This document shows, piece after piece, positions 13,910 to 61,510 of a stretch of 64,000 bases of DNA (position 1 is its first letter; each line of letters opens with the position of its first letter). The translations under genes were made by a program, and so were the position numbers. The notes beneath the pieces were generated by a model that was not told the DNA's origin, ran no database searches, and worked only from the letters and a program-made list of their open reading frames with translations. Source of the DNA: Geosiphon pyriformis uo1 (taxonomy: Eukaryota > Fungi > Glomeromycota); assembly GCA_016748015.1 (NCBI GenBank), contig JAAOMT010000039.1:15933-79932 (forward strand), given 5' to 3'.

Positions 13910-15405
13910 TTACAATTTGATTATTTGAAAGACTTCATACTCCTCGACAGAGAAGTTTACTCTTTCATGTTCTGAATCAGGCATTATAGCGTGCTCATAA
14001 GAATTATCGCTTCGACAATAGCATCCAGACTTATTTTGAAAATCATCACCTCCCATTACAAGATTAGACTCGCCAAATTTAGGTCCATATTTAGAGGAAT
14101 AATTACCTCCATGTTCGACACTAAATTTGCTAAGTTTAGCATTTTCAGCTTTCCCATTTCCAAGGGAGAAAATAAAACTTCCATCTCCCTTTGATAAACG
14201 GCCACCAGAATGCCAAGATACTGGGTTATATCCGCCAATCAGTTGACCAGTTTCTTTCACTTTGATAACAGTGACTGTTGCTCGTTTATCATTACATAAT
14301 CGGTGAAAATCGGCTGGAGTGAATCCGTCTCGACTGCCTTGAAGTAACAAAGTAATTTTATATTCAAGTTGGTTTTGAAAAGGAGTATTCTCGTCTTTGT
14401 CCTCAATCCAGTGAAGAAGCTGTTTTAAATTATGTATTTCAAGAAGTTTTGTTCGTAATCGTAATGGCTGAGCGTCTACAGACGTTTGATGACTCCCCGG
14501 TACTAAATAATGATGTAAAAGATCCTCATATAAAGTTCCGGGCAAGATTTTTTCAAACGGTTTTACTTTGTAGTAGAAGTCAACGGAAGATATATGAAAG
14601 AAACGGATAAAAGGTAGAAATTCTTCAATTATCCCATTAAAGGCTTCAAAGTTTTCATCCGTCCAGTTAGAGATTTCTTTTATATCAATATTGTTAGCCA
14701 ATTTAGCAGCTCCCCATTCCACAACCTTTTCCCATATTTCAGCTTCTTGCAAATCAAAGAGATCTCTTTGTAGGAATGAAACTAAAGCACATTGATCAAG
14801 CGAGGTGAAATCTTGAGAGTTGAAGATCGCAGCTGGATTTCTAACAGCTATCTCGGTAAAGAAATCCTGTAGCTTTTTAAAGGATGGATACTTGTATGAT
14901 GTTTCACGTAAAGTGAGAAAATTTTCTTTCAACTCTTTTGCATGGTGTTCAATTAAGTAGTCTTCAAGGTGGTTAATGAGCTTTTCCAAAATGAGCTCTT
15001 CAGCGGCAACGATTAATTCTAAAATTTTAGGCACTTCGTATTTGTTAAGTTCTATTTCACCGCTATACATGTATCTAAACAAAAACCAAAAATATTAAAT
15101 ACTAGAAATAAAATACTAATAAATGTATATTGAACAAACTAAACTCACCGAAGTATCACCTCAAAAATTTGAGGAGAAATATTAGGTTCAGAAAAAAGAA
15201 TAATGCCATTTTCTCTTTGAACCAAATTACTAGAGAGAGCAGCGGCAAAATACGAGGATCTTGTTGCTAAGACCAACCCATGAGCGTGAAAAGTTATCGC
15301 ATTAGGTCCATTACCAACGGTAATTCTAACATCAGAACATTTTTGGTTATTCAATAGGCTCGCAAAATCGAAAGACAAATCGTGGAGGAGTTGTTGGGAT
15401 CCCAT
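13910..15405 (-). CDS. BTB/POZ-BACK-TLDc protein (copy 1, intact, 473 aa)
   Basis: Exons 15405-15149 and 15074-13910 join in frame across a GT-AG intron. BTB motifs FHAHGLVLATRSSYF and YMYSGEI; TLDc motifs LLLQGSRDGF, FHRLCNDK, IGGYNP, GPKFG and VEEYEVFQI. Confidence 0.93.
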
Positions 15406-35012: not shown

Positions 35013-36672
35013 TTATAAGATAGTCCTATTTCTCACCAATCTGGGACTTTTCAAAGATCCTGGTACCACTTGAAAGACTTCATAATCATCCACAAAGAAA
35101 TTTACTCTTCCATTTGCAGCTTCCTCTAAAACAGGAAACTCATATGAGTTTGATTTTTTACAATGACATCCAAGTGTTGTTTGGAAATTATCGCTACACA
35201 AAGCCAAATCATGGCCTTTACCAAAAATTGGACCGTAGGAGGATGAATACGCAATTCCATCACCAGATTGGAATCTACTGATTTTAGCGTTTCTTGTTCT
35301 TCCGTCTCCCAAAGAAAAAATAAAACTTTCATCACCTTTGATCCATGGGTTACGTGGATCCCAGCTGACAGGGTTATAACCACCAATCATATTTCCAGAT
35401 CCCTTGACTTTGATGACGATTATTGTGGCTCCTTTTTTATCGCACAGACGATGAAAATCAGCTGGCGTGAAGCCATCTCTACTGCCACGAAGTAAAAGTT
35501 TTAGCTCATATTGAGATGTGGCTCTCGGAGGTGTCATTTTATCATTTCCTTCGATCCAAGCACTTATTCTACGTATATGCTTTGCTTTCAATAGTGTGGA
35601 AACAGAATTAAATAAGGAAGGTAATAAAGAGATCCTTCCAACTGGCATTGTTTGAGTAGAGTTTCGTGTCGATGGTGGTATACTTTGAGATGGAGGAAAT
35701 GAAGGTGAGGGCGAAATTCGATTTATTATCACAGAATTTCGGATAGAGTTTCCATCAACCAAAAAGTGACGCAGCAATTGTTCATATAAAGCCGCTGGCA
35801 ATATCCTTGCATATGGTTTGACTTTGAAATAAAACTCATCAGAATCCATATTAAAAAATCGAATCAACGGAATCAACTGTTTTAATGTCATTTGCAAATC
35901 ACTAAAGTCTTTTTGAGACCACGTTTTAACATTTTCTTTGATCGAGGGATTCTGAGCAATACCCCATCGTAGTATATTTTCCCAAATATCGACTTCATCA
36001 ACATCCAAGTCATCTCTCTTTAGCATTTCTAATAAGGACGTTTCTTGGAATGATATGAAGTCATCAGATTTAAACAAGATGGTTGGAAAACCTGTTAACA
36101 AATCTTTACAATAGTCTTGAAGTTTAGTGAAGGATGCAAAGAGGTAGGCGGTTTGATGAACGGCGATAAAATTTTGTTGAAGTGATTTTGAATAGTTTTC
36201 AATTAAATGATCTTGAATATAGTCGATAATTTCTTCAAGAAAAAATTCATCTGCTGCCACTAGTATGTTAAAAACTGTGATTAAATCAAGCCCCTCCAAG
36301 GAGATATTGCCACTATACAGATATCTAAATAAAAAAATAGATCGTAAGTAGAGTTTAAAAATGATGAGATATAAAAATGAAATTTATAAAGAATTCTAAA
36401 TAATTAATATACTTTAAAATAATTTCAAAAGTTTTGGGTGCCATATTTGGCTTCTTTATAATATACAAATTATTCTCACGTTTCACCCAATCATTCTTTA
36501 ATGCAGCCGCAAAATAAGGTGATCTAGCAACCAGCACAGCCAAATGAGCTTGAAACGTTTTCTTGTTCTGTTCCTCGCCAACAGTAATAATTGCATCATA
36601 GAAAACGTTACTTTCTAACAACGAAGTCAAATCTTGAGATAAATTAGCGAAAAAATTTTGATTTGGTGCCAT
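35013..36672 (-). CDS. BTB-BACK-TLDc protein (copy 5, intact, divergent, 523 aa)
   Basis: Exons 36672-36413 and 36324-35013 join in frame; intron at the same position as in the other copies. Extra Pro/Ser-rich linker before TLDc. Confidence 0.93.
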
Positions 36673-39920: not shown

Positions 39921-41417
39921 ATGGCGTCTCAACAACTCTCCCACGCTTTATCTCACGATTTAACGAGCTTATTGAATAATGAAATATTCTCTGATGTTAA
40001 GATTATCGTTGGTGATGGTCTTAATAATAAAACTTTTCACGGTCATTCGCCGATTTTAGCAGCAAGATCCTCTTATTTTGATGTAGCACTCTCTAATAAT
40101 TGGGTTAAAAGAGAAAATAAAACCATTATCTTCTCTAAGCCTAATATTTCACCACAAATGTTTGAGGTGATACTTCGGTAAGTTTAGTTTGCTTAAAATA
40201 TACTTGCTAATATTTTATTCATACATTTTATTATTGTTTTATCTAGATATTTGTATAGTGGTGAAATATCTCTTAAGGAATACGGAGTACCTAAAATATT
40301 AGAATTGCTTATTATCGCTGATGAGCTCATTTTGGAAAATCTAATTAACCACCTGGAAAGCTATCTAATTGAAAATCATGCCAAAGAGCTAGAAGAAAAC
40401 TTTGCCTCTTTGTATGAAATATCATTTATGCATGATTCGTTCAAAAAGCTGCAAGAATTCTGCACACAAATAGCAGCTAAAAGTCCAGCTATAATCTTCA
40501 GATCCCAAGATTTCACCTCCTTAAGTAAGAATTTTCTTTCCTCAATTTTGTCCCGCGATGACTTTATTATGGAAGAAATAGAAATATGGAAAAAGATTGT
40601 GGAATGCGGAGTTGCTAAATTGGGTAACAATATTAAGTTAGAAGAGATTCTTAACTGGACAGATGAGAATTTTAACGCCTTTAAGGAAATAATTGAAGGA
40701 TTTCTACCTTTAATCCGGTTCTTTCACATATCTTCTGTTGACTTCTATCACAAAGTAAAACCATTTGCGAGAATTTTACCCAGAACTTTATATGAAGATC
40801 TTTTACATCATTATCTAGTACCGGATAGTCATCAAAAGTCTGTAGATGCTCAACCATTACGATCAAATGTTGATTCAAAGCTTCTTCAGTTGCATAATGT
40901 GAGGCAGCTTGACCACTGGATCCAGGGCAAAGATAAAAATACTCCTTTTCAAAGCCAACTTGGAAATAACTTTAATTTGTTACTTCGAGGCAGTCGAGAC
41001 GGATTTACCCCATACGATTTTCATCGATTATGTGATTACAAAGGATCCACAATTAGTGTTATCAAAGTGAAAGTAACTGGTCAACTGATTGGCGGGTATA
41101 ACCCACAATCTTGGTCTTCTCGTGGAAAATGGTTAAATGGAAAGGGAAGTTTTATTTTTTCCCTTGGAGATGGCAAAGTTGAAAATGCTAAACTTAGCAA
41201 ATCTGTTAAAGAAAACGGACCTTTTGATAGCTCAATCCGTGGACCCGAATTTGGCATGTATAGTATTGTAATGAAAAGTAAAGATTTTCAAAATAACCCT
41301 GGATGCAATTGTAGAAAGGATTCATCATATGAGTACGCGATAATGCCTGATTCAGAAAATAAACAAGTAGACTTCTTTGTCGAGGAGTATGAAGTTTTTC
41401 AAATAAGAAAACTTTAA
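39921..41417 (+). CDS. BTB-BACK-TLDc protein (copy 6, intact, 475 aa)
   Basis: Exons 39921-40177 and 40247-41417 join in frame; full BTB and TLDc motifs. Confidence 0.93.
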
Positions 41418-50244: not shown

Positions 50245-51903
50245 ATGTTCAGGCTATTTTCACTCTTTGCGCACCGAAGTCATGATGACAATACTTCAAT
50301 AAGGACACCCCCCGAGAATCCATTAAGGCTTATATTACCTGCAGAATGTCTGCAAGAAGTTTTCAAATATTACGAAAATGACCCACATACACTTCGTTCT
50401 TGCTTATTAGTTGACCGTTATTGGTGTCAAAACGCTGTCGCAGTGCTTTACCGAAATCCGTTCGAGATCATACGCGAACCATCAGCCAAACTTATCCTCA
50501 CTTTTCTCAGCTTTCTTGACGATGATGTGAAAATAAAACTAGAAGAAAATGGTCTTGAACTCTCTTCTATGTTCACAAAAACTTCAATGCTAAACTATGC
50601 CGCGGTTTTAAGGACACTTTCGTATAAAGCAATCTACGATTGTGTTTTAAAAATTGTACCGCGCAACCATCCAAAATTTACACGACAATGGATGCGCGAA
50701 AAGTTTTGTCGAGTAGTGGTTGAAGAGCTTTGCAAATATTTTACCTTAAATTGCTTAATGTTGAATGAATTATCTTTCGACACAAAGAACATGACATTTT
50801 ATCCACCTGAAGTAAAAATAAAGTTTCCCGCACATCCAGGCGCCGGATTATTACTGCATCAGATTCGAAAATTCTCTTGTGGTGGAAAATACGACAAGGG
50901 TAATTTAATGAAAACCATGTCAAGAGTATGTAGAGATTTGCATACTCTCGAGTTGAATTTCAGTAGCCACGACATGTATGATCCGAAAAATGGTGATAGG
51001 ACAGAGACCAATCAGATGGGTGCTTTGATTCTAGCACAAAGAAGGCTTCAAAAATTTGTCATAAGAGGATCTTATTGTTTTTTATCGGATTTAATGCCAG
51101 CACTCGCCTCCCAATCTTCCTCGTTAACACATGTGGAATTTATACAAGTACTTTTCCAAAATTCGGACCCACTTGAAGTGGTTGCTTTATGTCAAAACTT
51201 GGAGACACTCATTTTCGATGATTGTAAATCCCTCACAAATGAGACATTGGCACCTCTGGCGAGAACTTCGTTTACTCGTCTCAGAAAATTAATTTTTAAA
51301 AATGCTCATCGCCGAGAGCTTCATAATTTGATCCCAGTAATTGAAAATACCAATGGAAGCCTTAGAGAAGTTCGATTCAGGCGACGAGAATTCCGCAATT
51401 CAGTTGTACGAGGCATACCAGATATGCCTCCAATAATTATGGAAACTGTGGCAAAGTCATGTCCGAAATTAATCACATTTGAGGGGCATATTGAGCAAGA
51501 AACAATGAGACCTTTAGTTTTACTTTTGGAAAATTGTTTAAGACTTAAAAGGTTGGCAATTTCTGTTGAAAGTCAATTCAATGAATTTTTCCGATCAAAA
51601 ATTGCTCTGCTCCTCCCAGTTACATTGTGTCATCTGACTATATCTTGGATGGGAAATTTTTCTGCAAGTGAATTGGACATATTCTTAAGGAATTGCCGTG
51701 TACCATTGGAGATTTTACAACTCACTACCTCTAGTCTGATCGATGATCAATTTCTCATAGCCATCATGCACTATGCAAGACGTACTGGTTCTCTCAAACG
51801 ATTAGCTTTATCACGTAATGCTCAAGTGACTGAAGAGGGAATCGAAAAAGCCCTTGCTGTGATTAACTCCGTTACAAAAACTGGCGAATATACAGAATGG
51901 TAA
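50245..51903 (+). CDS. F-box / RNI-like LRR protein (552 aa)
   Basis: F-box LPAECLQEVFKY..LRSCLLVDRYWC..LYRNPF followed by LxxLxL repeats. Single exon. Confidence 0.9.
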   Translation: MFRLFSLFAHRSHDDNTSIRTPPENPLRLILPAECLQEVFKYYENDPHTLRSCLLVDRYWCQNAVAVLYRNPFEIIREPSAKLILTFLSFLDDDVKIKLEENGLELSSMFTKTSMLNYAAVLRTLSYKAIYDCVLKIVPRNHPKFTRQWMREKFCRVVVEELCKYFTLNCLMLNELSFDTKNMTFYPPEVKIKFPAHPGAGLLLHQIRKFSCGGKYDKGNLMKTMSRVCRDLHTLELNFSSHDMYDPKNGDRTETNQMGALILAQRRLQKFVIRGSYCFLSDLMPALASQSSSLTHVEFIQVLFQNSDPLEVVALCQNLETLIFDDCKSLTNETLAPLARTSFTRLRKLIFKNAHRRELHNLIPVIENTNGSLREVRFRRREFRNSVVRGIPDMPPIIMETVAKSCPKLITFEGHIEQETMRPLVLLLENCLRLKRLAISVESQFNEFFRSKIALLLPVTLCHLTISWMGNFSASELDIFLRNCRVPLEILQLTTSSLIDDQFLIAIMHYARRTGSLKRLALSRNAQVTEEGIEKALAVINSVTKTGEYTEW

Positions 51904-52607: not shown

Positions 52608-52890
52608 TGGATAGATTGTAACATAAATAATAGAAAATATTAAGCATTGCTTTAATTATTATTTCTTGCATGGTCAGGTTTTATTAAGCAATGCCTAAAA
52701 AGAATCTCTATTTATCATAATTCCACAATTCCAGCAGTTGTACATGTTGAGCTCTCTAATTTTTTAGATAATAGATATTTTTGATTTCTCAGTTTTGATG
52801 ATTAAATATTGTTAAAAGCAATAATATGCCCAACAAAAGTATTTTTAAACAGCTTTTTAAATGATTTTCTTTGTCTTGCAATTTATCCTG
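52608..52890 (-). mobile_element. Second, more decayed 3'-end relic of the IS607/Fanzor2 element
   Basis: Colinear homology with 58066-58375 (gcaataatatgcccaacaaa, tgtcttgcaatt, cacaattcc.gc.gttgtaca, ggat.gattgtaaca). Confidence 0.8.
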
Positions 52891-54687
52891 TTTTTTTTTT
52901 GCATTGAGGAGTGCGCCCCAACTACCACCTAATAAAATATGAAACTCGTTAATTTATCATGTTTAATATTTTAAACAATAATATTCAATTAACAAATAAA
53001 AATATGTAAATATGTAAATTTACTTTGCGAATATAAAATAATATTATATTATATATATAATTAAGATTTTTACATAATTAACTATATAAATAAAATATTT
53101 TAAAGTCGTAAAAAAATATCATTAATTTATTCTTTATTTAAAAATAATCAAATGTTTTTTGAATATTCTTTTAAATTAAAATCAATTTTATTTTATTTGT
53201 ATTTCTTAAAATTAAAAGAATAGACAGTGGAAGGATCACACTTTGTTAAAGCAATAAAATAAAAATATTTAATTACAAAAGTAAGAAACTTACTTTTGTA
53301 ATTATTAATGCTGACAGAGAATGACACATGATAGGAGCAGCTAACGTGTGACCAGCCATCGGTGCGATTTTTAAATAAATAAGTATTTAAAATAATTAAT
53401 TTTTCTGTTAGTAAAATTGAAAAAATACCAATTAAAACATTAAATTATAACAGTTTAGCATTTTTTATTAACAATTACAAAACTAGTTTTCTATTTTCAA
53501 AAAATTAACAAATGCAATTTTTAAAATTAATAAAATTAATAAAATTGCTTATTAAATTGTTTTTATGTTACAATTTTTTGAATATCTTATATTACTTTTA
53601 CATTATTATTATTTTGCTATTTGTTAACATATTATTTTAATTTATAACAATATAAAAAATGTATAACTATTAAAATTAATTTTTCTATTATTTATAGTTA
53701 AATTTTACTAATAATAATAAATTTTTACAAAAGTTTTTTTAAATAAATTATTTTTGTATAATTTTGTTAAATTAAAATTAAAAATTAGAGAGATGTTTTT
53801 ATCAAATTGTAAGGCTATAAGTTTGGATCACTTAAGTTTTTTTTGTGTTTTTTATAATAATAACTAAAGCAATAATAAGAAAAAGCCAAAACAACCAAGA
53901 AACAATCTTTTTTTTTTTCTTAATATTAAAGTTAATTTTTATAAAATATTTTTATTATTATTTTAAAACTTGGTTTTTTTACATATTATTGGTTTTTTTT
54001 ATTTGCATTAATTATAATGTTTAATTCTTTTTTATCTATAAATAATAATTTTTTATTTTTAAATAATAACAATAATAATAATATATTTGTTAAGTAAATA
54101 TGTATTAGTATTTGGTTATATTATTTAATATATACAATTTTAATTAATTATTACTAATTTTAAAAACAAACAAACAATGTTTTTGCATGTGTTTTTATTA
54201 TTATTTAACCAAAAAATTGAATTAATAAAATAAATATAAAAAGTTTGTTTTTGGTATTTAATTTAATTCATTTAAGTAATTAATAATGTAATATTTTTAT
54301 AATTAATATATAATACTTAAATTGTATAAAAATAGTTGGTGGTTAAATAGTATTTGTTTTAATATTACAAAAATAAATAAATAATAATAATTAATTGTTT
54401 TTATCTAATTTTTAAAAATATTAATAAAATTTAAACTTTGCAAAAAAATTATTATCGATTGAACTACACTTTGTTAAAGCAATGAAAAAAAATTATCATA
54501 ATAATAAGTTTTTAAATGAATCAAAAATACAATTTTAATTAAAAATATTATTATTGTTATATTTTATATTTAATTTGAATAATAATTAAAATATTATAAT
54601 ATATTACATATTTTTTAATTTATATAATGTATTTTAACTTTTAACAAAATAAAAAATATCTTGTATAAAACCATTCAAAAATTTCAA

Positions 54688-56574: not shown

Positions 56575-58065
56575 GGATGAACGCTTTTAAAAACAAGTTC
56601 TTTTTATTTATAACATCGTACATGTATCTTCTATTCTTTGATCTTTCTTGAGTACAATAATTTTGTAATATAAAATAAATAAATTGAAATCTCCCAACTT
56701 TTAAGGCATTTTCGCAATTTCTCCTGTTAGCATGCTTTTAGTGTCAAATCCCATTTGAGAAATTGTGCTCGTTGATTAGATTCATTTTATCCAATGATGC
56801 CTATTGATTGTAAAGATCAAAGTCTACTCTTACAAGATTAAATTAAAAATTATGCGATCAATATGAATGAATAAGCGTAGAAAATTATTAGTGTGAGTTG
56901 TAACTCTGAAAATCCAAAAAAAATACCCGCGACGCAACGCGCAGCACGACGTCTTGTCCTTTAAGAGTTTATTAGAAATTTTCAAAAAGAGCTAGCAGCG
57001 CGTGACTTGTCCTCCCAACATCAGGGCTTATTTCGAACTACACTCTCCTTTCTCCATGGCCTTTTCCAAAATGACAAGGCCATATTTTGATAAAACTTCA
57101 ACACTGATGCCACAAAGTTCATCAGGAGTTTCACTACGAATGGTTATACTCGATTCCTCATTTTAATCCGCTTACCAAGGCTTATTTGAAATCATTGCTT
57201 AATTCAGTGAATACTTTCAGTTTTTCCATGTTAACCCAGAATCCGTCCAATAATGAACTGTCAAGTGGTGTGAGAAACAAAAATCGATGAAGCCCCATTC
57301 ACCTTTGACGCTTATACTCCAGACAAAACAATTAAACCCGAGGATGCGAGTTCAGTAGATCAATTTTTAATGACGGAAATATTGGCACAGTCGATCCATA
57401 ACTAATACGGCAAATTTGGTCAATCTTTCACTTTCTGATGCCTTGAAAAACATCACAATCGGGATCATTTGAAAATTGGAATATAATTGTTTTTTATATA
57501 CATCCAGCCTTTTTCTAAAAAACATTAGTATTATTTAAATGTTTTTTCGAGCAGTTGAAAAGATCACTTGTTAACACCAAATTCATTCTAAAGATATATT
57601 TTAATTTGCAATTCTGTAACTTAGCAGCTTGGAAGAATAAATCATTCAAGGTTTTAGCTAAAATACTGCAGAATAAACAATTATTAAACATATATATATT
57701 AATTGATATTGCTATTTTTTTATAATTTGATTCATTAAAATAAAATAAAAAATATAATGCAATTATTGGCAATATTTTACAAATTTATTTTCAAACTACA
57801 TAATAGCTTATTTATTTTATATTTTTGATAACAAGTAAAACAATTAAGACTTTCTATTATAATTGCTTTTCTTATTTTTAGTTTTGATAATTTTTTTTAC
57901 TTTTTTTTCAAGTAATATCTCTTTCCTTTTTATTAACACCTTATTTTTAAAACACCCAACAATTTATTTAAACCAGGTTTTTAACAATAAAAATTGGGAT
58001 TATCAAAATTCTTAGAAATTTGACTTTTAAAATTTCTTATTAAAGCTCAAATAATAGTTTAACAT

Positions 58066-58145
58066 CGGATGGATTGTAACACATCAATAATAGGCAATAC
58101 TAAGTATTACTATGTAACGCCTATTATTTCCTGTATGGTCACCGT
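58066..58145 (-). ncRNA. Putative Fanzor omegaRNA scaffold (3' part) / element right end
   Basis: Lies immediately after the Fanzor ORF. Perfect 10-bp stem AATAATAGGC/GCCTATTATT (58086-58095 and 58119-58128). Conserved in the relic at 52608-52677, where homology stops at ...TGTTACAATCYATCCR. Confidence 0.6.
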
Positions 58146-59170
58146 AGGATCCCCCGAGCGCCACTTTCATCTCTATATTTAACAATCACACAATTCCGGC
58201 TGTTGTACACTTTGGACCCTCCAATTCTTTGATATCTAAGCTTCGTTCTGGATAATAACACGGATCCCCAATTCCTCGGCCTTGATGATCAGACGTTGTC
58301 AAAAGCGATAATATGCCCAACAAAGCATTTTACGAACCATTTTTCGTGTAATATTTGTTGTCTTGCAATTCACCATGTCCAACACTGTAAAAGGAAAAAT
58401 GACAATGGCGTCGAATTCACGGGTAAAGAATCCAATTGATTTCAGGTGAACTTCACTTTGCAAATGTATAACTTTTCACCGCATCTGAAAAATTACATTT
58501 CCAGTAGCCGGGCCATTTTATTCTTACGTTTTGAGGAGGATACTAATAACTTATCCTTTTGGAAGATGAGATAGTCCAAGTAATTACAAATGCAAACTAT
58601 AAATCCAATAGAACGTTCACCAATCTTGCCTACATCTTTCGTGGGAGAGTACCATATAAAAGGTATACGGATGCCGTGATAAATGGAGACTGCATGAAAG
58701 ATCCATCCGCTTGGGTTTCGCGGAGCTGTTTTTGTATCTCGTATACCTAGGTAAACTTCCACACGTTAGTTTTGCGAGAGTAGGCTAGCTTGTTATCTGA
58801 CATTATCTTGGAAAACCGGTCACCTATTATTATTCCTCTTTTTTTTCGAAAATGAAGAGGCCACAAAGCGTGCTTGCCATTATCCAGAATGGTAATAGGC
58901 TTGTAACTATGTGTGGTAAGCACCGACGGATTATGGAGATGAGTGATATAAAACCTGCTCCATGTGGATTTGAAAAATTTTGCGTACGAATTGTCATTGT
59001 TTATCGCTGATCTTTTCGAGATCGAAATGATCGAGTGTGCTGATAAAAACGTTTGTCCCTTTTTGGTTCAGGTTTGAATTTTGCTAATTTATATTACGCC
59101 TAATCAGTAATCAATGCTTCATCGAAGCAAAATACCGAAATACACAACAGTTCACATGAACTTGCGCTTG
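58139..59170 (-). pseudogene. Fanzor2 / TnpB-family RNA-guided nuclease
   Basis: SFRSRKD, VSIYHGIRIPFIWYSP (from VSIDPG; RuvC-I), LQSEVHLK..FFTREFDAIVIFPF.VLDMV, RKMLCWAYYRF*QRL, VIIQNEA*ISK (shifted RuvC Glu), IGGSKVYN..NC and RDESGARGI (RuvC-III). Confidence 0.9.
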
Positions 59171-59184
59171 CCCCATTTTGGAGT

Positions 59185-59560
59185 TTCTTGTCTTCGTGTT
59201 CATTAGCTCTCCTTCCCTGTAGTAGCAAATAAAAACTATATTGATGGCAAGAATATCTTGTGAAAGATGTATTGGAAGAGGTCGAAGGCAAAGCGGCAAA
59301 GCCTATCGCGATGGGTGATCACAATTTCCGAGACCATTGCGCGGCTTCTTTCTTCCAATAGGATCTTTAAGCCCTAATCGTTTGAAATTGATACCTGACC
59401 CGAGATCGCTGAGGAGTTCTTAGGTTGGAAATCGAGAGAGGAGGAGTTGTTTTTGTCGCTCGAGATCCTGTTTTTGCTTGTACTAGGCGTAGAAGTAAAG
59501 TTTCTTGGTGGTATCAGCATTTTGAGAAGTTTGTTCAGGAAAGGAGTATTTATTTTCGCG
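59185..59560 (-). pseudogene. IS607-family TnpA serine recombinase
   Basis: YFYA..KQKQDLERQKQLL..FP..ELLSDLGSGINFKRLGL..VSEIVITHRDRLCRFAFDLFQYIF..QDILAINIVF..GRRA. The catalytic RVSS appears deleted. Confidence 0.9.
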
Positions 59561-60042
59561 GTCAAGCATTACTAAGCAGGTTATTGGTATTTTTATTGAT
59601 GGCATTATTAAGCAAATCTTTCATCAGTTAGAATGTCTTTTAGATTTTCCTAATGTATCATTGATTGGTGCTACCAAACCCAGCCAATCCACAATAAGGA
59701 TGATGACATCTAAGCGGGAGTGTAATGTGACGCAACAGTTGACATAGGTTATAAACAGAGCATAGGATTGGTCCGCGGCACAAGAAGAGAGACAAATACT
59801 CAACTTATGTGTTTTAGACCTTATCATTTCTATTATAAAATCATCTCAATTCACACCCTCTGATCCTCGACGTTCCAAGGTTCACAACTAGCGAACACAA
59901 GGCGCTTTTGAGAAACTGGTTTCTTTCCTCCTTGGACAAAAGGCCACACTTCGAGCAGATTATTTATCATTCCTTTAATCTCAAACATCTTAACTATCCT
60001 TCTATAAAGTTACCTAGCTAAAGCGTAAAAATTTTCACAACA

Positions 60043-61510
60043 ATGTCAGTTGACCTCGAACCTCCAAATCAACTCTCGTTTACTCGTATGTATGAAGTTC
60101 GATTGCTACCGAGACATATGTATATTTTGGTTTAGAGTACTTCAGATCAAGACTTTGTCGATATTTCTTTCACCTGATCCTGTACATCCAATGGTCAAAT
60201 TATTTTTTGTGCTAAATTCTCTTTAATTTTAGGGCCTTTTACACAAACTGTTAAAGAGTGTCTCACCGTGAGTAATCCTAATCATGAGCCTGTCGCTTTT
60301 AAGGTTAAGACAACTGCTCCAAAACAGTATTGCGTAAGGCCAAATTCCGGAAGGATTGAAGCTGGTCAAAGTGTTACAGTCCAAGGTAATTTCTATAGGG
60401 CGTCATCTACTTTTATATGTGTCAATTTATTATCTATGAAATTCTGGTATTGCAATAAATGTTATTTAAACTGTTTCCTTACTATTCTTAAATTTCATTT
60501 ACAATAGTTGTTCTTCAGCCCATGAAAGAAGATCCACCTCTCGACTATAAATGTAAAGACAAGTTTTTAGTGCAGAGTGTTGCTATCACGCCTGATCGGG
60601 AGACTTTAACTTTGCCTGAATTGGTTAGAAATAATATATACCTTAATAAGGTCATTGCCACATATTTCCTTTGATTAATCATAAAATTTTTACAGTGGGC
60701 CATAACGGAAAGACAATCAAAAGAGCTGATCAAAGAAAATAAAATTCGATGCATTTACCTTCCACCCCTTGCACCGAGTTTCCTTAATCATACTGCCGTT
60801 CAACCTTCTTCTTTACCATCTGGCTTCAATCCACCACCCTCACCGACCGAGCAATTTAGTGTTCCTGCCACCAGTATAGCTTCTGATTCAATGGTATATA
60901 TCATTCAAAATGTTTATAGCCTGCTTTAGAAAAACATACCCTTTAAAAGTGGTTTGTTTCTGCAATTTCTTTTTCACAGGCCAATTCCCCTGTTGATCGG
61001 CTGACGCACTCAAATTATTCCACAGTCAAGGAAAGTTCTGCTTCACCATTTGAAAAAAATCCGATTTCAAACGTTGAGCGCTCTTCAGCTCCAATGAACG
61101 TCACCAATGGGAATGATCATAATCAAATCCCCCCAACACCAACTTTTGTAGGCACATTCCCGAAAGATGAGAAAGAACACCATTTCAGATCCAAAAATAC
61201 CTACATCAGTGATGCTTCATCTGGCGTTGATGATGAAGCTACTCGTTTACGACGTCAATTAAATGAGGCACAAGAAGAAATAAAACGCCTCAATCATGTA
61301 GTTGAAAATTACAAGCAAGAATTGGATACTGCCCGTATGAGGCAGCGTAAGAGTGAGGAGGTCGCTGAAAAAGCTGGTAGAAATAGTTCTTCGGCTAATG
61401 CTGGTTTTGCTGTCCGAACACAAGAAAAAATTCCCGAAGGATATTATCCATTTGAATTTATTGTGGGTGCAGCTGTGGCCGCCTTTTTGTTTGGAGTTAT
61501 GTTTTTCTAA
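60043..61510 (+). CDS. SCS2: VAP/Scs2-family ER membrane protein (MSP domain, coiled coil, C-terminal TM), 5 exons
   Basis: [54 protein letters not shown]; C-terminal coiled coil and tail anchor; GT-AG introns. Confidence 0.93.

Follow-up and report, generated by a model that had tools for sequence, protein, structure and literature searches.

The question raised by positions 58045-58145 of the window (the whole 64,000-nucleotide stretch of Geosiphon pyriformis uo1 DNA analysed here) is whether the conserved non-coding sequence behind a Fanzor stop codon represents a transposon end, a guide RNA scaffold, or both. The genome is AT-rich and comprises 128 Mb in 792 contigs, with BTB/BACK-TLDc genes among its content. 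BTB/BACK-TLDc paralogs, at least five in number, are scattered between 13.7 and 41.6 kb of the window (for example at 13910-15082, 35013-36299 and 40251-41417); they are partly decayed and 70-90% alike, a picture typical of glomeromycete expansions. An F-box-like ORF is located at 50245-51903.

Right end, identity and relatives of the element

The original prediction had let a Fanzor element terminate here on its right side, with homology between two copies stopping abruptly, and this was borne out by 34 genomic copies together with TnpA and Fanzor2 matches. Positions 52609-52765 and 58067-58230 were aligned by blastn at 68% identity (E 4e-6), and identity drops directly after ...ACAATCCATCCG (58066) and ...ACAATCTATCCA (52608). 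When 34 distinct right ends of the genome were collected and aligned, 0.7-2.0 bits per column were observed up to the final G and 0.05-0.6 bits beyond it, and homology past the CCG was absent across these ends. The last 22 nt gave 63 matches in the genome as compared to 0 for a control pattern. The same sharp right end recurs in the genome's second Fanzor2 family, at approximately 20 metagenome loci, in Cetraspora pellucida and in the intact element L140/L141. In the copies L025/L050 (G000 C600:221794-222436) and L142:3068, an internal inversion sets the right end opposite the ORF tail.

Positions 58045-58145 are the right end and adjoining flank of a dead IS607EU copy, composed of a MerR/serine-recombinase TnpA and an overlapping Fanzor2 (Table 1). 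Internal deletions have left a shorter element than the 2.2-2.6 kb found in intact relatives. The Fanzor2 pseudogene, the N-terminal frame of which overlaps tnpA, carries many stops and frameshifts and has YHG in place of the RuvC-I motif DPG, and the TnpA pseudogene is without its HTH part. Among sister pieces of the element, PF07282 and PF12323 were detected, the best solved-structure match was ApmFz2 (9B0L), TnpA structures of ISC1926, ISC1904 and IS1535 were matched, and one piece showed 100% identity to NCBI G9A89_022644 of G. pyriformis; PF00239 is also present in the genome. Fanzor2-type RuvC motifs are found in the intact relative P0226 at 443 (DPG), 588 (NEAY), 596/613 (CxxC) and 621 (DRD). 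The element has no TIR, its ends not being inverted repeats; the left junction reads (R)CCG followed by the element start ATGAAAAG, and on the right the element closes with ...ATCCG. TIR, Helitron and Fanzor1 identities were ruled out by the ends and the protein motifs, and a ghost element of the Fanzor1/SpuFz1 type was rejected on the absence of a TIR, the presence of TnpA and the Fanzor2 motifs. In a six-frame search that ignored introns no intact Fanzor2 was found in the genome, and the family appears dead in G. pyriformis because all 68 PF07282 matches sit in frames of 183 aa or less.

Table 1. Features of the 58-kb element, its flanks and the second copy (positions in the window)
Feature	Position	Strand	Basis or remark
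Decayed IS607-type element (TnpA + Fanzor2), 1559 bp	58066..59624	-	ends set by other copies; tblastn with intact relatives
Fanzor2 pseudogene	58139..59514	-	tblastn of P0226 residues 17-631
IS607 TnpA serine-recombinase pseudogene	59147..59530	-	tblastn with intact TnpA of L140, E 2e-13
Cryptic intron, 77 nt, GT..AG, ACTAAC branch-like site	58747..58823	-	skipped in two RNA runs, kept in DNA run
Hairpin A 5' arm, surviving, codons Ala-Arg-Gly-Ile	58150..58159	-	alignments, folds
33-nt deletion junction	58149..58150	-	alignment to family majority sequence
Fanzor2 stop codon TGA, within hairpin C 3' arm	58139..58141	-	
Hairpin D, long 3' hairpin (stem of the original prediction)	58086..58128	-	folds, covariation
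Terminal right-end motif CAATCCATCCG, ends TCCG	58066..58076	-	alignments of copies and relatives
UCCAUC, 3' strand of long-range (pseudoknot-like) pairing	58073-58068	-	complementarity, alignments
Host flank in guide position, unique to 58-kb copy	58045..58065	-	copy comparison
Left junction ACTG, CpG-decayed ACCG	59625..59628	-	comparison with other left ends
Second copy, 5'-truncated tail of ~285 nt	52608..52891	-	blastn, alignment

Relatives with 55-86% identity were obtained by profile search and by scanning metagenomes. They come from soil metagenomes, Cetraspora pellucida and Diversispora epigaea, and the intact ones carry Fanzor2 ORFs of 643-685 aa, some on giant-virus-like contigs. 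L140:4390-6597, on a gene-dense contig, is an intact 2.2-kb IS607EU element in which a 241-aa TnpA (MerR and Resolvase above cut-off) overlaps a 646-aa Fanzor2. The same contig carries P11_C and DUF5901 genes, which are typical of giant viruses and mark it as giant-virus-like. In a quick tree the Geosiphon pieces form one group (SH-aLRT 95) with proteins of Cetraspora and of soil metagenomes, and their neighbours are Diversispora and intact virus-like ORFs, L140 among them; as the tree contained no cyanobacterial rows, it does not test deep origin. Neither IMG/VR viral contigs nor GTDB genomes yielded relatives with the protein and DNA patterns used, so that the Nostoc endosymbiont and other bacteria are not supported as the source of a recent transfer.

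The proposed omegaRNA scaffold and its long-range pairing

Covariation analysis supports three hairpins in fungal and soil-metagenome relatives, and structural conservation was thereby confirmed. The proposed scaffold of 75 nt does contain the 3' hairpin of a conserved omegaRNA-type scaffold, but constitutes only the 3' part of approximately 127 nt; nor does the conserved RNA-like region start at the stop codon, as had been supposed, since in the family it starts some 50 nt further upstream, inside the ORF. We model the omegaRNA scaffold as approximately 127 nt overlapping the last 17 or so codons, with a predicted 5' limit at about -127 in intact copies, at the 5' arm of hairpin A; at the family level it ends exactly at the transposon end and is followed by variable flank. 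In the relatives, two-sided changes were observed at 5 of the 10 pairs of hairpin A (codons ARGIFLRA, 96% paired), at 2 of 3 counted pairs of hairpin C and at 4 of 7 counted outer pairs of hairpin D. For the model overall 93.5% of cells are paired, with 9 two-sided pairs (0/500 shuffles) and 33-57% in slid controls, though the sequences are kin, so that the shuffle controls overstate significance and these figures are not probabilities. Fold z ranged from -2.9 to -5.8 across six lineages. An Rfam search of 57900-58400 gave no match, and a bacterial promoter/terminator scan was uninformative, the host being a fungus.

The relatives keep two near-unchanged blocks, 83-119 nt apart, namely the codons TTG CTT GAT GGA GCC and the terminal CAATCCATCCG, while between and before these blocks the sequence varies and pairing is kept. 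All five codons are unchanged in 19-20 of the 20 relatives, as compared to the 2-5 codons used for conserved residues upstream, and the near-invariant GAUGGA corresponds to Asp-Gly codons that are fixed at synonymous sites. GAUGGA is complementary to the terminal UCCAUC, a pairing which RNAalifold recovered unprompted and which forms the closing helix in single-sequence folds. It is kept in 96% of cells, albeit without two-sided changes, as the strands are nearly invariant and therefore offer no covariation of their own. We infer from the model that this pairing resembles the TnpB/Fanzor2 pseudoknot. The second Fanzor2 family of the genome (L094:305-428, G000 C404; L095, L084) ends GARGIFLRALLNGCIKFE; its RNA module is a duplicated old ORF tail with a GAUGGA block approximately 210 nt past the stop, terminates in the same CAATCCATCCG and has a fold z of -5.8.

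The stem that had been described in both window copies is a perfect 10 bp at 58 kb, where AATAATAGGC (58128-58119) pairs with GCCTATTATT (58095-58086), or 11 bp counting G-U, with a fold z of -3.5; in the 52-kb copy, however, it is only 7-8 bp, with a z of 0.0 against shuffles. The ORF end of the family majority sequence is GARGIFLRALLDGALVLQ-stop, with 33 nt missing from the 58-kb copy. Lost in this deletion were hairpin A's 3' arm, the GCUUGAUGGAGC hairpin with the putative pseudoknot loop and the beginning of hairpin C; of the scaffold, only the 3' ~84 nt plus one arm are retained. In the 52-kb copy the loop has changed from GATGGAG to AATAAAA and the terminus reads TATCCA. Judged by sequence, neither copy would be able to make a full omegaRNA, the loop being deleted at 58 kb and mutated at 52 kb, and with the nuclease also broken both are best described as fossils. 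The guides originally quoted are true flanks of the two copies (58065-58045 and 52607-52589), but would have served as guides only when the copies were intact, their pairing now being lost or mutated; no target of the guide of the 58-kb copy was found in the genome.

Left junctions, predicted target motif and transcription

Left ends were collected by pattern (43), of which 38 were in register. In 26 of the 38, the three bases directly ahead of ATGAAAAG match CCG with at most one mismatch (chance 0.064 each), and CpG decay accounts for most of the differences. At position -4 of those 26 junctions we observed A17 G7 C2 T0, i.e. a purine in 24 of 26 (p 7e-6), and this purine is probably host-derived because its A:G ratio follows the flank background. 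Six metagenome elements start at ACCG, whereas right ends are TCCG. The idea that the terminal CCG echoes the target motif thus holds insofar as CCG recurs at the left junctions, but RCCG is more likely than CCG to be that motif. With a TAM of CCG alone, the guide of each copy would match that copy's own right junction perfectly, a situation which RCCG versus TCCG would avoid, and the junctions suggest that the target motif may be an RCCG which is distinct from the element's own TCCG right end and so avoids self-cutting. No empty sites were found in the genome or the fetched loci (four weak matches as compared to two for a control).

Of three sequencing runs two are RNA, because the neighbouring gene is spliced in them, and the third is DNA. 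Assembled long-RNA contigs cover 58070-59563 but not 57300-58069, ending at 58070 (X1) and 58170 (X3). The dead element is transcribed in the sense (minus) direction, because the contigs cover it and skip a minus-strand GT..AG segment. No contig of the two long-RNA runs covers the guide flank; contigs of this kind reveal neither small RNAs nor RNA ends. In run X1, loose ends at 59563 (-) and 59816 (+) resemble a template-switch adapter. Divergent transcript starts approximately 250 nt apart are suggested, the dead element being transcribed on the minus strand and a spliced gene on the plus strand, with the 59563 call resting on 9 matching letters. This plus-strand gene beside the element has introns within 60085-60979 and, by its motif, is presumably a VAP/MSP-domain gene.

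Interpretation and comparison with known systems

The reading in which we place considerable confidence is that of a dead IS607EU/Fanzor2 copy whose ancestor had an omegaRNA scaffold of approximately 127 nt, inserted at RCCG and was spared from its own nuclease by TCCG. The ancestral TnpA would have inserted the element at RCCG, leaving CCG at both junctions as the copies show, through a recombination chemistry presumed from IS607. A 3'-end transcript would have yielded the omegaRNA, with a structure supported by covariation: hairpin A, GCUUGAUGGAGC with the GAUGGA:UCCAUC pairing, and hairpins C and D. Some 15-20 nt of flank behind the scaffold would have acted as guide after putative processing and binding, Fanzor2 would have cut the empty site RCCG plus guide and in doing so may have promoted re-insertion, and the element's own right junction would have been spared because it reads TCCG, by analogy to GGG and CGG in ISXfa1.

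It could alternatively be supposed that a 75-nt scaffold lies wholly after the stop codon, as in SpuFz1, and still functions in the window copies with the quoted guides. The 3' hairpin is indeed well conserved and stable alone, the omegaRNA scaffold of the Fanzor1 protein SpuFz1 likewise measures 75 nt (PMC10432273) and the element is transcribed. Against this, the protein is of the Fanzor2/IS607 type and not Fanzor1, hairpin A, which covaries, and the fixed GAUGGA are both located before the stop, the second family retained its GAUGGA block after the coding role of that block had ended, and the longest open frame on any PF07282 match is only 183 aa, and we regard this reading as quite unlikely. 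A slightly smaller probability is given to a conserved end that is a DNA signal only, consisting of TnpA binding sites and a recombination core with hairpins and complementarity as by-products. TnpA-binding repeats are a feature of IS607 ends, words resembling GCTTAGTAATGCT are present close to both ends of the element, and recombination alone predicts that the terminal motif be conserved; two-sided pair changes in three hairpins of unrelated sequence, and fixed synonymous codons complementary to the terminus, are however hard to explain by binding of double-stranded DNA.

The least probable reading, for which we see a very slight chance, is that the right ends of dead copies have been kept and transcribed as trans guides for a Fanzor2 encoded elsewhere, for example in a virus. 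Transcription of the 58-kb copy would fit, as would the last 75 nt being 88% like the majority sequence as compared to 78% for the upstream ORF, but the copies were gathered by a match to this end and its conservation is subject to that ascertainment. Both strands of the putative pseudoknot are intact in only 3 of the 34 genomic ends, and the 58-kb copy is devoid of the loop and has a guide without a target in the genome. The preferred reading remains the dead IS607EU/Fanzor2 copy.

Among the closest known systems are the eukaryotic IS607 elements with Fanzor2 (IS607EU), for example that of ApmFz2 from Acanthamoeba polyphaga mimivirus (PDB 9B0L), which has a pseudoknot and a 205-nt scaffold (PMC11832414, PMC10530073). 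In common with ApmFz2/IS607EU, the Geosiphon family has a MerR/serine-recombinase TnpA overlapping the Fanzor2 ORF, a DPG RuvC-I motif and a Glu six residues before the zinc finger, a structured 3' RNA whose 5' part is predicted to pair with guide-adjacent nucleotides, and a G/C-rich motif at the element start. It differs in its scaffold of approximately 127 nt, which overlaps the ORF end, and in its motif RCCG (as compared to 205 nt and GGG), as well as in its glomeromycete host, its intact relatives of 643-685 aa and the fact that all Geosiphon copies are dead. In the bacterial IS607 TnpB of ISXfa1, with a 144-nt scaffold, a 5' apical loop forms a pseudoknot with guide-flanking nucleotides and GGG versus CGG prevents self-cutting (Yoon et al., 10.1101/2023.08.09.552727). 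The predicted architecture of three to four stem-loops plus a pseudoknot is similar, and here too the two junctions have a common core and differ at one upstream base, which would be RCCG versus TCCG; by this analogy our data suggest that the self-avoidance rule of ISXfa1 may hold in eukaryotic IS607 elements. For NlovFz2, a Fanzor2 of Naegleria lovaniensis, a 5'-CCG TAM was reported (PMC10432273), as compared to the 4-nt RCCG to which the Geosiphon junctions point, a comparison at the level of the motif. As in SpuFz1, a conserved non-coding block after the stop is followed by variable flank; unlike Spu-1, which has TIRs and no pseudoknot, the Geosiphon element has TnpA, no TIR and a terminus predicted to pair with an upstream coding loop.

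Fanzor2 in fungi is already known. The part of the Saito et al. 2023 supplement that was available shows that Fz2-like genes of glomeromycete fungi had already been mined, as it includes a Glomeromycota Fanzor entry, Gigaspora margarita CAG8578432.1, uncharacterised there, with a similar RuvC-I region (AIDPGIRT..WYS..KG.G); Geosiphon and Diversispora are absent from that portion of the supplement text. No literature on Fanzor2/IS607 elements in arbuscular mycorrhizal fungi (AMF) was found, including by combining Fanzor2/IS607 with Rhizophagus, and Fanzor and IS607 are unmentioned in an AMF transposable element survey (PMC11952901).

As a locus the element is inert, a fossil, and what it offers is a map: from dozens of copies and relatives come the element ends, an omegaRNA model backed by covariation and a prediction of the target motif. 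More tentatively, the elements of glomeromycetes and giant-virus-like contigs may constitute an uncharacterised Fanzor2 clade with a compact scaffold of approximately 127 nt, a loop embedded in Leu-Asp-Gly-Ala codons and a 4-nt RCCG TAM as opposed to TCCG at its own end, and if this is true that TAM would exceed the 3 nt of the TAMs reported for Fanzor2. IS607EU elements are hereby extended to arbuscular mycorrhizal fungi, where surveys of transposable elements omit them, and the mapped fungal Fanzor2 clade has intact members, which makes it a directly testable compact RNA-guided nuclease.
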